Positions 49,173 through 57,722 of a stretch of DNA of 64,000 nt are shown piece after piece. The DNA is taken from assembly GCA_025594325.1 (NCBI GenBank), contig JANHCV010000002.1, positions 2,046,001 through 2,110,000 on the forward strand. Direction: 5' to 3'. Position 1 is the first letter of the stretch. Every line of letters begins with the position of its first letter. The DNA comes from Blastocladiella emersonii ATCC 22665. Its lineage: Eukaryota; Fungi; Blastocladiomycota. The position numbers were made by a program, and so were the translations under genes. The notes under the pieces are model-generated. The model ran no database searches. It was given only the letters and a program-made list of their open reading frames with translations, and was not told the DNA's origin.

Positions 49173-50441
49173 GCTTGGCCACGGTCTCGACGCAAACGAC
49201 AGGTCTCGACCGCCAGTCCCTTGAGCTTGGTCGCGCTTGGTCACAGTCCCAACCCGGCCGCGGCCGCCTCGAACCACGAGTTTCCTACCTGCTCATCACG
49301 CCGCAGTTCTGTGACGAGCTTAACTTCTACGTGCGCGTGATCTGAACGCCGTGCGCCTTCACCCCGCTCATCGAGTTGGACGACGCGTCGCTGTTGGACG
49401 CGTCGTTCATGTTCGCCATCACGTCTTCGATCACTGAGGTTGACATCAAGTCGGGTATCTGCACCGGCGAGGGCCTAGAGTTCCCGCGCGAGGCGCGCGA
49501 CATCATCTAGTCGCGCTGAGCTCGATTGAAGCGCCCCATCGTCTTCGTCGCGTTCGTTCTTGGCAACCGCTACTCAGACCTGGTCGAATCGAGCCCATCG
49601 TTTCGCCGCGGGGCCGTCAACGCCACGGTCGCGCTGTTCGTCGTACTGTTCCATGAGAACGCTGACTAACTCATTCAAGCAGTTCCTGCGCCACGACCTT
49701 ACGGGCGAGGATATCGCGCTCACGCTCGCCAGCAACGAGGGCAAGGCCGCGGACGCCCTTCTGGCGCTCGCTGCTGGCGGCCACGACGACGACCAGGATG
49801 CGGCCACCAACCTCTCGCTGTTTGACGAGCTCGATGCGCTTGAGCTCGACGAGACCGAGATCGTGACGCAGCCTCTCGCCCAGGTCTACGCCGTCGCCGT
49901 CTCCAAAGTCGTGCAGAGCGAGGCGATCGGCCACCTCGTCCGCTAGGCTGTGTTGACGCATCGCTCCCTTCCCCTCAGTAACGGAATACATCTCGCTCTC
50001 TTCTTCGTCCTCAATCTTTTGCTTGCTCGTGGTCGTCTAAGAACGTTTAGAGGTGCGCGGGGTCCGGAAATGACGAACCAGATTATTTCATGTCTTCGGA
50101 TAGTCTTGATTGATTTGACACCTCACAGACTCCTCACGCTCACGGTGAGTCTCACCGTGTGAGAGTGAGCATCTTTGCCTCCCTCCTCACACGTGCCAAC
50201 ACTAACGGGCTCGATGTGGCGCAGCGCGTCTCGCACGTTTCACGTGATTCTCAAACGCGTCGATCATGTGCGAGACACTTTTCCTTGATCACAAAACGTC
50301 GCCTCCGACCCGGGTGGGACACAACATGCGTGCTGTCGATCGCACGCCATATTCTAAACCGTTGACTCGAGCTCGGATCGATGCATCTGGAACCTCTGAA
50401 GCTCGAGCAACTCTACGCTATGCAACGGAGCTGATGCAATC

Positions 50442-51363
50442 ATGACGACCTGGAGATACAACCCAGCCAATCTCTCGGACAATCTGTTCCACTTTGGGCT
50501 CTCCTTGCACATTCTCGGGCTTGGCCTGATCGCGATATGCACGCGGACATGCGTGATCAAAGTGCGCCGATCGCCATCGCCGTTCTGGTGGGGATGCATG
50601 GTGTCGACGTCGTTTCTCTTGACGGCGACACTCATGGAACTCGCCTACATTCTCTCGCGGCAGTCGAGCGGGACTATCTGGGGATGGAGCGCGACGTTGA
50701 GCGCGTCGTCACGTTCATCGCGTTCCTTGCAGTCGCCCTCATCAACGTATCCGTCGACACGCTCTTCGCGTCCGTGGTCACGAACACGATCCGAAACGCG
50801 CGCCGCGGGTCGGACGTGTCGCGGTTCATGGGACTCGAGAAATGGTACATCCGAAAGCTGTATTGCATCATCACTCCACGGCTGACTCTTCGCGCCCCGT
50901 CCGACCCTGTTTCTAGGCGTTTCCGCTACCTCGCGTACCTGCCCGCCATGATCGCGTACCTCGGCTACGGCGGCGCGCTCGTGGCTGCGATCGCGCTCAA
51001 CTCGGCCACGGGGCTCAACTTCTCGACCATCACGCTGTGCCGGTTCAGCGCCACGGTCGCGCTCTCGACGTTTGTGTTGTACAGTGTGCCGCGGACCAAG
51101 TCGCTGATTGCGGCCTCACGCAGCCAGGCAGCGTCGACCGCGTACCAGTCGGCCAACACCGAAAGCCTCACGGCGCCCAACTCGGTCATCGGATCCACAG
51201 CGTCCAAGGCAACGCGCGGCAGCGGTGGTGGAGGCGGTGGTGGTGGAGGTCCTACGGTACGCCCTAGCGGACTGATCAGCCCGGATCGCTGGGCGGACCT
51301 TGACTGCGCGTATCTCGCACCGTGTAGGTTGAGCGGAGCGCGTCCGTTCCGGCCGACGAGTAA
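50442..51363 (+). pseudogene. 7TM GPCR-like paralog C, internal deletion of TM3-TM4 with frameshift near 50687
   Basis: GTIWGW is joined out of frame to RDVERVVTF; the rest is colinear with paralog B, including the intron at 50845-50916. Confidence 0.8.
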
Positions 51364-51490
51364 AGTGTCTCCCAGCTGTCGAAAGTCGGGACTGACTCCG
51401 TTTCCTCTCCCATCACGCTGTCTCTTTCGGTATAAATGGCCCAAGTAAATCTGGACTCTCAAGCGTCGTTCACGATGATAACTTGAAGCA

Positions 51491-52726
51491 ATGGCATCCA
51501 CATGGAAGTTTGACCCCAACAACTACGTCGACCGGCTGACGGCCCTCGGCATCGCGCTGCACATTGCTGGTGAGCTGGCGCTATTCGCGTCCATGGCCGT
51601 CTGCGTGCGACATCTCCACGGCAGACGAACGCCGTTCTGGTGGTTCACGTTCGCCGCGTGCGTGATCCTGGTTCCTTCGTCGGCCCTCGAGATCGGCTAC
51701 TCGCTGTCCAAGATGTCGAACGGGACGCTGTGGACATGGAACTCGTTCCTCTCGCTCGCCGGCGACCTGACGGTCCGCGTCGGTTTCGCCATGATGAGCG
51801 TACTGCGGTTCTACCGCGTGGCCCTCGTCCGTGGTCCGACCGACGTGCACGCCAAAAAGCAGCTCTATGCGGCGTCGACCGTCGTGTCCCTGGTTCTTTG
51901 CGTCTCGGCCGTGCTCGTCACGCAGGTGCGCGTCCTCGAGAACCAGTACGTCAAGGAGCGCGCAGCCGGTAAACCGCCGCCGGACCTGGTCGACGCGCGC
52001 AACACGGAGCGCTACGTGACGTTCGCGACGTTCCTGTTCATCAGCGCGTGCAACGTGGCCACCGATATTCTCTTTGTGCGCGTGATCCTCGGCAGCATCC
52101 GAAGGACCAAGCTGAGCGCGTCGCAGGGCGGGCTCGGGACGCGGACGGACCTGAGTTCCGGGAGCGCGACGCTCGCGATCCGCAAGCTGCGCAAACACTG
52201 GCGGTCGAGTCTGCCGTACCTCCCGTCGCTCCTGACCTACGTTGCGTACGCGGTCACGCTCATCGTCACGGTCGTCAGCCCCGACACGGGCAACACGTAC
52301 CTGACGATTACGCTGTGCCGCTTCTCGGCCAACGTCATGGCCGCGACTTTCGTGCTGCACTCGATCCCGCAGACCAAGCGGCTCGTCAAACGCGCGCGCG
52401 GCGGGAGTACGGGCGTGGTGAACGGGTCCAACAACCCGCGCGGCAGCAGCCATCAGCTCGGCACCACGCAGGCGGCTGGCGCGGCGGCCTCGGGATCCGA
52501 GACCTTCATATCGGCCTCGAGCCAGCTGTCGTTGTCCGGCGGCCCCGAGCAACCTAGCCGAACGGGTCTGACGCCCGGCTCCCGACACGGCAGCAGCTAT
52601 CAGCTCGGCAGCTTGCCGACGACGGCCACGTCGGCCTCGGCGTCCAACGCGCTCCTGATCCCGAGCCAGTCCACGGCCGTGGCCCCCGAGAAACCTCGCG
52701 GATCCGTGGCCGCGGACGCCAATTGA
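51491..52726 (+). CDS. 7TM GPCR-like paralog D, intronless, 411 aa
   Basis: Single uninterrupted ORF with seven TM segments; PFWW, LRFYR, TITLCRFS shared with paralogs A-C. Confidence 0.8.
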   Translation: MASTWKFDPNNYVDRLTALGIALHIAGELALFASMAVCVRHLHGRRTPFWWFTFAACVILVPSSALEIGYSLSKMSNGTLWTWNSFLSLAGDLTVRVGFAMMSVLRFYRVALVRGPTDVHAKKQLYAASTVVSLVLCVSAVLVTQVRVLENQYVKERAAGKPPPDLVDARNTERYVTFATFLFISACNVATDILFVRVILGSIRRTKLSASQGGLGTRTDLSSGSATLAIRKLRKHWRSSLPYLPSLLTYVAYAVTLIVTVVSPDTGNTYLTITLCRFSANVMAATFVLHSIPQTKRLVKRARGGSTGVVNGSNNPRGSSHQLGTTQAAGAAASGSETFISASSQLSLSGGPEQPSRTGLTPGSRHGSSYQLGSLPTTATSASASNALLIPSQSTAVAPEKPRGSVAADAN

Positions 52727-52753: not shown

Positions 52754-55700
52754 TTACACCTGTTTGTACGAGTACCAGAGGTAGATGGCGAGGAGCCAGA
52801 AGCAGAAGGTGACGGCGGTGAGCGACATGGTGGACTGCTGGACCGACGCGATGGGCGTGGCGTTGAGCACGAACACGGGCATATCCGTGGCCAGCGTGCA
52901 GTAGCTCCCAATCGGCACGAACACGCGGAAGTGGTACAGCTCGGCGCCCTTGAACACGAGCGACGCGTTGACGGTCGGGTCGGCCGTGGCCATGAAGGTG
53001 GCGTTGGGCGGCGCGCACTCGTTGACGAACGAGCTGATGCACCAGTCGGCGCGGTTGTTGAGCTCGACGATCGTGAAGGGTACGGCGACCGGCGAAAAGT
53101 TGTCCATGTCGCGCGTCAGGAAGAAGCTAAGCGGCAGATCCGCCTGCTGGTACGCGCTCAGCACCCGCGTGATGCAGTCGCTGTCCTCGATCCGGAACGA
53201 CCGCGTCTCGGCGTCTGAGCACCCGCACGCCGTCCGGTTCGCCTTGCCCGCGCACGTGTGGTAGGAGCCCGTCGATTTGCTCAGCGGGAAGAAGTCGTTG
53301 TACCGCGGCGCGCTCGGGTCCGCGTTGTAGATGTACGTCGAGTTGGGCACGCCGACGCCCAGCGCCGACGGCGGGCGGTAGTTGGTCTGGAGAGTCCGTC
53401 TCTTTGTTAGCGTGGCCTCGAGTCAAAGGTCTAAAAGCAGTCGTACCGGCAAATACGTGATCATGGACGCGCCGTTCGGGAACACGAGGTCGTCGCGGAG
53501 CTCGAGGCTGTCCGAGTTGGGGATGTTGTAGAAGAGGCGGTACGACGGGTGGCACCCGTTGATGACGCGCATCGTCGGAATCGTGAAGGGGCACGCGATC
53601 GACATGGGGCTCGGCATGATCCCGACCGTGGACCCGACGCCGACACCAACCGCCGTAGCGGCCGCCGAGTTCTCGCCGACCGCCGCGAGCGCCGTCGAGA
53701 CGGTCGCGTCGATGTTGTTGAATGCGATCTGCATCGCCGACGTGGGCGCGAACCGGTCGAGCGAGCTGTTGGCGCTCGTCGTCGTCGCGTAGTAGTCGGC
53801 CTGGGTGAGCAGCAGGCCGAGCGTGCCGATCGTCGCGCCCTTGGGTGGGATCGTGGTCCCGTCGATCGCCCACTCCCACGACGCGCGCAGCTGCAGCTGG
53901 TCAAACGACGCCAGGTACTCGACCGGGTGGTGGTTCAGGTCCACGTTGTTGAGCTGGAAGTGGATGTCCATGCCGCGTACCGAGCACGCTGGCGGGACGA
54001 CCGACCACGTCTTGCGCTACACGGACGGAAACGCTGGTCAGCTCCCATCCCGGCAATCCCAAGCGGAAGCGACGTACCGGCTGAAGGTAAGTGGACGAAA
54101 CATAGTCGGCAGCAAACACGGCGACCTGGCTCGCATCGAAACTGGACCCCGCGAGCCCCGCCATCGCCGTGACCACGAGCGCGCTCGCCGCGGTCGCCGA
54201 CGCGACGCGGGTGATCCGAAGCAGCGCCGCACCGCCGTTGATCGAGACGTACGAGTTGAGCATGCTCGCGGCGAACGCGAAAGCCTTGCCGCTCTGCGTG
54301 GACAAACTGACCTCAGACCCGGCGGTTGCAGTCCCCGCAGCGACAGAAATCGACTGCCCGTAGCTCATGGCCGCAGCGGGTCGCGCGCGCAGGTCGACGA
54401 CCTTCCACCGCGTGGTCCCCGAGATCGGCAGAGTCAGGGCGAGCGACGAGATGACCATCCCGCGGACCGTCTGCGCGTCGGTCACGGAGAGCACAAAGAC
54501 GGCGTGGACCGAGTTGACGACGACTGTGGACCCGACGACGCGCGAGTCCCACGCGGCGCTGGACGACGTCAGGACCAGGTCGACGAGCGTCTCGCCGGAC
54601 CCCGCGACCGTGGCGCCCGTCGCGCGCACGTCCATGGCGGTCGCGGTGATAGCGAGCGGCGTGATGGCCGTGAGCTCCTGCACGTAGGCGGACGCGCCGT
54701 CGGTGGCCACCTGGGAGACGAACAGAGTCCCGCCGGTCAAAATCGAGATGAGCTGGCCCTGGTCCTGGTCCGTGAACGCGTTGGCGACCGCGGCGCCCGT
54801 CGCGCTGAGTGCGCGCAGTGTCACCTGGTCGATCCCCGCGGGGACATACCCGAGCGACGCCGCGGCCGCGGTGTCGTGCACGTCGATCGGGGCCGGGTTG
54901 ATGTCGTACATCGCCGACGACTGCGTGATGGACGTGACGCTGACGGGTGTGCGCTGCAGCGCAAGCGTGGTGCCGTCAAGCGACACGAGATCGAGGCGGA
55001 TCAGGTTCCCCGCGAGGTCGAACAGCACGGCGGACGCGGGCGGGGCGCCCGTGGACCCGGCAAACGACTGCGAGGCCGAGATGGGCGTGAGCAGCGCGAC
55101 GCCCGCGCGCCCGTACAGGATGGTCCCCGACGGCGTAAGTACGGCGTACGCGTTGCGGTGGCGGCAGCTCGCGTATGCGGTCCCCGCGCCGCCGAGCGTG
55201 CTGGGCACGCGCATCGTGGTGCGCCACGTCGTCCCGCCGTCGGACGACGCGAGCACGTGCGAGCCCACGGCGTGCAGCTCGTACTCGTCGACGTGCGGGA
55301 AGATGCCGAGCGACGGCGTGGCGTCCGAGGGCAGGGTTGCGACGGTGCTCGCGGTCGTCGCGTTGACGATCGAGTACGTGTTGGACGCCAGCTTGAGCAG
55401 CGCGAGCGGGGAGACCACGGATAGGTCCGACGTGAACGTGTCGACGACGGTGGCGCCCGAGGGGAATGCGGCTGAGGCGAGCCACTTGGAGTGCAGCGGG
55501 TGCGCGCTACTCAGGAGCAGCCAGTACGCGGCGCGCGCGCTGTACAGCGTGACCGACGGCGCATAGCAGCTGCGGCGGCCGAAGAGCAGCGCGCCGGCGG
55601 TCCCCTGGTCAATGGCCGCGATTCCCGTCGTGACGCGCACGACGTTGGTGAGCGCCGTCGACATCTGGTACAGCCCGTTCGATGTGGCGACGAGCAGGAC

Positions 55701-56912
55701 GTCACGGACGCCGAACCCGATATCGTAGACGGTGAAGCTTGTACAGTTGGCGCACAGCGACGAGAGCGAGAATGCGCGCCACGTCGCCCAGCTGTCGAGC
55801 GTGTGGAGGACCTGGTTGTTGGTCGTGGGCGACGTGAAGGCGAACGCGTGGCTCTTGCGGCACGGGTGCGGGACGAGGCGGAGCGCCGTGACGGGGGCCG
55901 ATGGGAGCGCGGGGGACGCGAGCGGCGCGATGCCCCACTTGACGCCGTTGACGGCGGCGGGGCTGATGCTCACGACGCTCGGCGCGATGTTGCACCCGAG
56001 CGCAGACGCGCCCGTCGCCGAGAGCTCGAGGTAGACGAGCGACGCGCTCACGAGCGCCTGGCTGTTGATGTGCACCCGCCACGTGCGGTCGGTCGTGTTG
56101 AGCACGGGCGTCAGCGTCTGGTCCATGGTGTCATTACGCAGCACGACGTCCGGGTAGTGGCCCTGAACGATCATGGACTGCGCGAGGACGCGCGAGGGAA
56201 CGATGCCCTGTGGGTCAACGACGTTGATGGTCACGTCGGCGCTGGCCAGGCCGAGCTTCGAGTCCATGGACCACGACACGGTCGAGTCGAACGTCGCGCA
56301 GGTCACTACACGGCGAGAGGCTGTCAGCGGCTACTTTGAGCGGCCAGACATCAGTCGTGCGCACTCGGCTTGCTCTGCACGTTAATGAACAACGAGAGCG
56401 TCTTGCTCGGGGTTCCGTCGAGGTCGACGGCCTTGAACGTCTTGACGGACGCTGGCGAGCCGGACGTGAGCGGCGTGATAGTGCCGTCGGTGAGCGTCAC
56501 GGTGACGATCTTGGTGCCCGTGGTGCGGTAGACGTAGGCGAGGGATTGCTGCGCGGCGGTGCTCGGCGTGCTGAACACGGAAGTCGCCGCCTCACCCGAG
56601 GCCGAGGTCTCGCCCCAGTCGACGAGCATCGTGTACTGTGCTGTTGGTGGAACGCGGAACAGTGCCGTGATCTTGGTTTCTGTGGGCGAGCCGGTCGCTG
56701 CGTCAGGGACGTGTCTGGAGGCGGCGCTGAGCGGACATACGGTAGCCCACATGGTACGAGTCCCCGAGCTCGGACGACGCCGAGACGACGGCGTCAAAGT
56801 CGGCTGCTCGGACAGCGGACGTCAACAGTCCCACGGCCAGCACAAGGCCCACGAGCGCCGCGAACAGCCGATGGCGCAGATTGCATGGTGACACAGAGGT
56901 CCAAGAGCGCAT
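52754..56912 (-). CDS. CATSPERB: CatSper channel auxiliary subunit beta homologue, 1305 aa; exons 56912-56741, 56679-56365, 56305-54078, 54016-53447, 53386-52754
   Basis: Signal peptide, large ectodomain and C-terminal TM; LPTNYRPPS..G..VP....IYNADPS..P....F..SK.TG....C....R..CGC.....SDC and FKGAELYHFRV...YC match recalled CATSPERB C-terminal motifs; four 59-61 bp introns join all exons in frame. Confidence 0.82.
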
Positions 56913-57037: not shown

Positions 57038-57722
57038 ATGACGCGCATGCAGCTGATACTTCCCCGCCGCGACGGCGAGGGCGCGATTGCCACCCCCGCT
57101 AACTCGGTGCACTTTCTTCCGTGCACCGTGCACGCCGACCGGGCGGCGCCCGTCTCCAAGTACTTTGTCGTCGAGCCGGCGTCCGTGCCGACGGCGACGG
57201 GGACGGACTCTGCTGCGGTGAGTGCTGCCCCTGAGCCTGCTTTCCGCTCCTCGTTCCGCGGTCGTCGGCTTGAGGGCAAGGTGCCTGACACGCATGGTTA
57301 CACGGGTACGCCGCAGTCTAGCAGCCAGGACGTTCGTGACGGCGTGCTGAGCCGGCATCCGTCCGCCTCCAGGTCTAGTTCTTCGGGCGCAGCCGGCTTC
57401 GGGCCGCGACCCTACGACCGGCGAGCACGCCGAGGACAGCTACCACGACGAGCCCATGGAGGAGGAGACTTCCGCGAGGTCCGACCTCGAGGTCCGCGCC
57501 GTGGGCCACCTCGCCAACCCGATCGTGTGGGACCACGACCAGCTCCCGACAGTTTACGAGTCGGCCGTCATGCGTGGGTTCGAGTGGGCCTGGCTTATGA
57601 ACGAGGTGCGGATGAATCACTCGCAGTCGCTCATGTCATGCTTACTGACGCGGACGTCCTTGGTGTAGGTCCATCGCCCTGTCGAGTACCCTGCCGAGAC
57701 GGAGGAGGCGACGAGCGATTGA
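57038..57722 (+). CDS. RNH203: RNase H2 subunit C, 3 exons
   Basis: VHFLPCTVH...VSKYF, SSFRGRRLEG...GYTG, VWDHD...EWAWL..VH. Confidence 0.85.

Follow-up and report, generated by a model that had tools for sequence, protein, structure and literature searches.

A probable CatSper beta subunit gene in the zoosporic fungus Blastocladiella emersonii

A five-exon gene on the minus strand

We examined a gene in a 64,000-nucleotide stretch of the Blastocladiella emersonii ATCC 22665 genome (positions 2,046,001 to 2,110,000 of contig JANHCV010000002.1, assembly GCA_025594325.1); this whole stretch is called the window, and positions below are counted from its first nucleotide. The gene lies on the minus strand at 52754–56912, and reading that strand and splicing it by script gives five exons and a product of 1305 aa. 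The product is very probably a real and intact beta auxiliary subunit of the flagellar Ca2+ channel CatSper, making the gene the B. emersonii orthologue of CATSPERB. Its C-terminal region carries the Pfam domain CATSPERB_C (PF15149; 136.5 bits against a cut-off of 27, E 1.3e-39, profile positions 29–251 of 258, whole protein as query), and the agreement with animal CATSPER-beta, in sequence profile as in predicted fold, extends along the whole length of the protein. A first-pass annotation of this DNA had described a five-exon, 1305-aa type-I membrane protein with a series of CatSper-beta motifs. The length was exact and every motif is present in the product, namely LPTNYRPPS (across intron 4), IYNADPS, SKSTG, CGC, SDC, FKGAELYHFRV and DWG...YVYRTTGTKIVTVT.

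Homology was the only guide to the splice sites and start codon of the 1305-aa model. All four introns are of the GT..AG type and have a CTGAC or CTAAC branch site 15–25 nt 5′ of the acceptor (Table 1). The residues at the intron 2 junction, SKPMTCATF, align without gaps with TKPVPCYQY of Allomyces, and an unspliced read-through of intron 3 departs from the frame of exon 4. Splicing intron 4 (YLP/TNYRPPS) restores the LPxNYRPPS motif that is found throughout the family. An upstream acceptor for intron 1 was also considered, giving a 43-nt intron and a product of 1311 aa, and was dropped in favour of the 61-nt intron because the 6 added residues are found in no orthologue. The DNA around the gene has a G+C content of ~65%, and the large open reading frames (ORFs) that also occur on the plus strand and in other frames are a usual by-product of such high G+C.

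Table 1. Exons, introns and selected domains of the B. emersonii CatSper-beta gene, in window positions.
Feature	Positions	Strand	Description
Exon 1	56741–56912	-	start codon 56910–56912; signal peptide and first residues of the mature protein
Intron 1	56680–56740	-	61 nt, GTATGT...CACAG, branch site CTGAC
Exon 2	56365–56679	-	divergent PKD-like beta-sandwich domain (DWGE...YVYRTTGTKIVTVTLTD)
Intron 2	56306–56364	-	59 nt, GTGCGC...TGTAG, branch site CTGAC
Exon 3	54078–56305	-	sandwich like the CATSPERB 1st domain, seven-bladed beta-propeller, head domain, extra beta segment of ~105 aa
Seven-bladed beta-propeller	~54888–55916	-	within exon 3; includes the Asp-box SSDGGTTW
Extra beta segment, ~105 aa	~54078–54380	-	within exon 3; P0001 residues 780–884
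Intron 3	54017–54077	-	61 nt, GTACGT...TGTAG, branch site CTGAC
Exon 4	53447–54016	-	Ig-like domain and beginning of the C-terminal stem domain
Intron 4	53387–53446	-	60 nt, GTACGA...TCCAG, branch site CTAAC
Exon 5	52754–53386	-	CATSPERB_C stem with conserved cysteines, transmembrane helix, 3-residue cytoplasmic tail, stop codon 52754–52756
Single transmembrane helix	~52766–52849	-	within exon 5

The deposited counterpart of this gene on the same contig is H9P43_002613, a "hypothetical protein" of 1280 aa (here P0001). The two models are identical from DFDAVV onward and differ at the 5′ end only, where the deposited one begins at ATG 56886, takes out a further intron of 48 nt and is left without a signal peptide (region 56790–56912). 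In contrast, translation from ATG 56912 with no such intron yields an open frame with a classical signal peptide at residues 1–37 (hydrophobic core at ~15–30, hydropathy peak from residues 12–19), which we called from hydropathy and comparison with orthologues. The Allomyces javanicus and Coelomomyces models have an equivalent signal peptide directly ahead of a conserved DAV..SSS.GD stretch. Since these relatives carry such a peptide at the same stretch and a type-I ectodomain needs one, the 1305-aa model is probably preferable, and the deposited H9P43_002613 probably lacks the true signal peptide. H9P43_002613 can now be called a CATSPERB-family subunit instead of a hypothetical protein, and its 5′ end probably needs correction to take in the signal peptide.

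Family assignment and predicted fold

Exon 5 by itself is enough to recover PF15149 (E 7.9e-38). When the protein was searched against all solved structures with phmmer, the only matches were CATSPER-beta chains, mouse 7eeb_E and 9ubw_E (E 2e-23), with a second, weak stretch in which the Asp-box blade SSDGGTTW is aligned with mouse SMDGGNTF. An exhaustive phmmer search of 1.8 billion representatives returned 187 relatives, and the alignments to orthologues begin at about residue 1009 of P0001. The relatives identified by name include fungi (Allomyces macrogynus AMAG_07910, A. arbusculus, A. javanicus, Sorochytrium, Coelomomyces, several chytrids and Gonapodya), protists (Chromosphaera, Thecamonas, Gefionella, Diphylleia, Cyanophora and Hondaea) and animals in which the protein goes under the name CATSPERB (Nematostella, Owenia, Patiria and Nannospalax). 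All of the nearly invariant residues of the family are kept in B. emersonii (N, Y, R, P, P and S, plus five cysteines), and at the level of sequence the combined motif and profile match to CATSPERB is far beyond chance. A word-indexed protein search with the large exon returned the genome's own protein and nothing else, probably due to Ala/Ser/Thr-rich words flooding the candidate list.

Upstream of the stem, Pfam gave sub-threshold matches only for exons 2–4 (GLEYA, PKD_4 and Sortilin-Vps10). A profile–profile comparison with hhalign, using ten sequences, mostly Blastocladiomycota, against twelve animal CATSPERB sequences, aligned P0001 163–1261 with animal positions 76–1088 over 933 columns (probability 100, E 1.3e-69). 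The AlphaFold model, made from a 73-sequence alignment, has a mean pLDDT of 86.4 and a pTM of 0.83; the exon 3 region is mostly at pLDDT 85–95, and a terminal helix of 30 residues is predicted at model residues 1105–1134. Foldseek against the PDB placed mouse CATSPER-beta (7eeb_E) at 4.9e-47, with the epsilon, gamma and delta subunits far behind (7eeb_H at 3.6e-25, 7eeb_F at 1.6e-16 and 7eeb_G at 3.2e-16) and then unrelated propeller proteins. Alignment to 7eeb_E with VIA-align gave a Z of 26.9 over 899 residues, joining model residues 1–1108 to chain residues 37–1058, and the next entries were generic beta-propellers (Z ~19) that align with model residues 123–465.

The first-pass annotation had proposed a full-length homologue of CatSper-beta in a fungal genome, to be checked by a profile search and by comparing a predicted structure with mouse CatSper-beta. 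Both of these checks bear the proposal out, and Pfam, hhalign, Foldseek and VIA-align all give CATSPERB. It had also suggested that the long Ala/Ser/Thr-rich ectodomain (A 13%, S 11%, T 10%) may be a lineage-specific addition, which did not hold up. Because this region is aligned with animal CATSPERB over the 933 hhalign columns and the 899 structural positions, we take it to be folded and homologous to the animal ectodomain, and not a low-complexity addition.

The predicted architecture from N- to C-terminus is a signal peptide, the PKD-like sandwich, the 1st-domain-like sandwich, the seven-bladed propeller, the head, the extra beta segment of ~105 aa, the Ig-like domain, the Cys-rich stem, one transmembrane helix and a 3-residue tail. 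This gives a predicted type-I topology, with a hydrophobic N-terminus ahead of a large ectodomain that holds 11 N-glycosylation sequons, and a single C-terminal helix followed by a short tail. Mouse CATSPERB (chain E of the CatSpermasome, 7EEB/9UBW) has in common with it the propeller with an S-x-D-G-G Asp-box blade, the head, the Ig-like domain, the Cys-rich stem and the single C-terminal transmembrane helix, and both stems carry LPxNYRPPS...YxADPS...SDC. Overall identity between the two is just ~15–16%, and unlike the mouse subunit the fungal protein has the added N-terminal PKD-like sandwich and the ~105-aa beta segment. A. macrogynus AMAG_07910 (KNE62723.1), which is from the same fungal order, is 42% identical end to end, and together with the A. 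arbusculus and A. javanicus orthologues it has the same domain order as B. emersonii, PKD-like N-terminus and extra segment included. The Thecamonas protein AMSG_06718 also aligns at full length (residues 145–1177 to query 152–1195). Extra domains were seen in the deposited orthologues of Gonapodya sp. JEL0774 (an N-terminal Cyclin domain) and Cyanophora paradoxa (a C-terminal ureidoglycolate lyase domain), and these are probably neighbouring genes that were fused in the gene models.

Several points weigh against an intact CatSper-beta subunit. The 5′ end of the gene is uncertain, with a deposited model that lacks a signal peptide, and no RNA runs were listed, a search for runs of any kind giving just three from DNA of the source sample. 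The N-terminal CATSPERB models of Pfam (1st, 2nd, head and Ig-like), which were trained on animals, do not match this protein by itself. The same Pfam models do match the chytrid and Sorochytrium orthologues, which themselves align with the B. emersonii protein; since they miss the B. emersonii protein itself, its full-length homology rests on the profile–profile comparison and the predicted structure. One alternative is a true CATSPERB member that is no longer part of a CatSper channel, in a genome whose CatSper1–4 pore subunits would be lost or incomplete, with an ectodomain that has taken on another role at the zoospore surface, such as adhesion or ligand binding. The PKD and beta modules, which the animal channel subunit lacks, could be read in this way. 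We consider this unlikely. The stem and the transmembrane region, which make the contact with the pore subunit in mouse, are the best-conserved parts of the protein (54% identity to Allomyces for the stem and 87% for the helix), and Allomyces, from the same order, is reported with CatSper genes.

A decaying or silent relic gene that is not expressed would likewise agree with the lack of a listed RNA run and with the "hypothetical" label of the deposited model, but it is a very unlikely explanation for five open exons, four canonical introns, the retention of every nearly invariant family residue and an AlphaFold model that is confidently folded throughout. The choice of beta over gamma, delta or epsilon was made from the Pfam, hhalign, Foldseek and VIA-align scores. 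A plan of propeller, Ig, stem and transmembrane helix is common to all four auxiliary subunits, CATSPERD/E_C gives a weak match (19.9 bits, E 5.8e-4, under its cut-off of 27.4), and the two N-terminal sandwiches find their best solved match in 7eeb_H (Foldseek, E 7e-7), followed by generic Ig-like folds, all of which could be expected from a mislabelled auxiliary paralogue. With 136 bits for CATSPERB_C versus 20 for D/E_C, a Foldseek preference for the beta chain of 22 orders of magnitude, 933 hhalign columns shared with animal CATSPERB and a sequence search of solved structures that gives beta chains only, such a mislabelling is extremely improbable.

The PKD-like N-terminus and the extra beta segment

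The PKD-like N-terminus had also been put forward as a possible lineage-specific addition, and here too the orthologues point the other way. A significant Pfam PKD domain is found at the N-terminus of five of them, in Gefionella (1.6e-12), Cyanophora (6.7e-12), Diphylleia (4.4e-8), Polyrhizophydium (3.3e-7) and Chromosphaera (5.5e-7), a set made up of a malawimonad, a CRuMs member, a glaucophyte, an ichthyosporean and a chytrid. The Chromosphaera domain stands directly ahead of CATSPERB_1st, and Thecamonas is not among the PKD-bearing orthologues. Unlike these five, the Blastocladiomycota fall below significance, the B. emersonii match to PKD_4 being weak (E 0.11). AlphaFold predicts a beta-sandwich at P0001 16–134 (pLDDT ~70–86) followed by a second sandwich, and the exon 2 segment can be aligned to the N-terminal parts of the orthologues from Gefionella and Blastocladiomycota. 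The PKD domain of Blastocladiomycota has diverged below what Pfam scores as significant. Pfam PKD was not found in Nematostella and Nannospalax, the two animal sequences scanned, both of which begin with CATSPERB_1st, and the animal N-termini in the 73-sequence alignment are short before that domain. Since a significant PKD heads five protist and chytrid orthologues, the module is widespread outside animals.

The beta segment of ~105 aa between the head and Ig-like domains (P0001 780–884) is confidently folded in the AlphaFold model and has no counterpart in the animal hhalign profile. It is filled in nearly all fungal and protist orthologues, those of Thecamonas, Gefionella, Diphylleia, Cyanophora, Chromosphaera and Polyrhizophydium among them, as well as in a fragment from Patiria miniata, and the sequences from mammals, Nematostella, annelids, rotifers and Hondaea lack it. 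This patchy distribution suggests repeated loss. A single loss in Metazoa is ruled out in its strong form, as the P. miniata fragment has the segment and the labyrinthulomycete Hondaea is without it. Judging from the sequences compared, the PKD domain and the ~105-aa module are both widespread outside animals and mostly absent in animals. We did not come across a statement of this distribution in the literature, though no search was aimed at it.

A possible steering channel in zoospores, and the neighbouring genes

CatSper genes have been described in A. macrogynus, where CATSPERB, G and D are expressed in the sexual stage (10.1101/230292), and a survey of CatSper subunits included Allomyces (PMC5362262). 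A CATSPERB orthogroup with 9 proteins, specific to flagellated fungi, appears alongside CATSPER1-4, D/E, G, T, EFCAB9 and TMEM249 in a 2026 survey covering 184 fungal proteomes; the survey dataset includes Allomyces, Catenaria and Paraphysoderma, and does not include Blastocladiella (PMC13358043). Among the papers searched, none linked CatSper to Blastocladiella genes. On the basis of Allomyces, Thecamonas and Aurantiochytrium, CatSper is already accepted to have a deep origin, and with CATSPERB already known from Allomyces and from flagellated fungi generally, the B. emersonii gene adds one species. By analogy with Allomyces, an intact CatSper complex in B. emersonii is plausible.

In mammals, sperm hyperactivation and male fertility both require CatSper, and we know of no functional expression of the channel in heterologous cells. 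In the structure of the mouse CatSpermasome, each auxiliary subunit reportedly has its helix packed against a single pore subunit, with a canopy formed by the four ectodomains. If the fungal protein works in the same way, its transmembrane helix would pack on the voltage-sensor domain of one pore subunit (CATSPER4 in mouse), so that the B. emersonii protein would bind a CatSper4 orthologue, and its ectodomain would make up one quarter of an extracellular canopy that stabilises the channel. The channel would then sit in the flagellar membrane of the zoospore, where the Ca2+ it admits may alter the flagellar waveform in steering.

Blastocladiella has no known sexual cycle, which would leave zoospores as its only cells that could use the channel; in Allomyces, CatSper has been discussed for gametes. 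The zoospore flagellum of B. emersonii bends asymmetrically in a Ca2+-dependent manner, according to work cited in PMC12714865, and phototaxis in this fungus is cGMP-based (PMC4046227). A link between the two is speculation. With zoospores that are a laboratory model of phototaxis, Ca2+-dependent flagellar bending and no gametes, B. emersonii is a useful organism in which a role of CatSper in plain zoospore steering could be tested. Tentatively, and with more doubt than confidence, we propose that non-animal CATSPER-beta keeps an older and larger ectodomain, with a PKD domain and a ~105-aa module that most animals have lost, and that B. emersonii CatSper is a steering channel of zoospores, possibly the Ca2+ entry downstream of the rhodopsin-guanylyl-cyclase/cGMP phototaxis pathway. 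Should this be true, B. emersonii, an optogenetic model fungus, would offer a tractable non-animal system for studying CatSper gating.

On the plus strand, three ORFs of 303–428 aa (46321–52726) with no Pfam match run towards the CatSper-beta gene and meet it at its 3′ side. The gene for RNase H2 subunit C (Pfam RNase_H2_suC; ~57038–57720, plus strand) is divergent from the CatSper-beta gene across an intergenic gap of ~125–150 bp, and a Tctex-1 dynein light-chain gene lies ~10 kb beyond it, at the edge of the examined locus.

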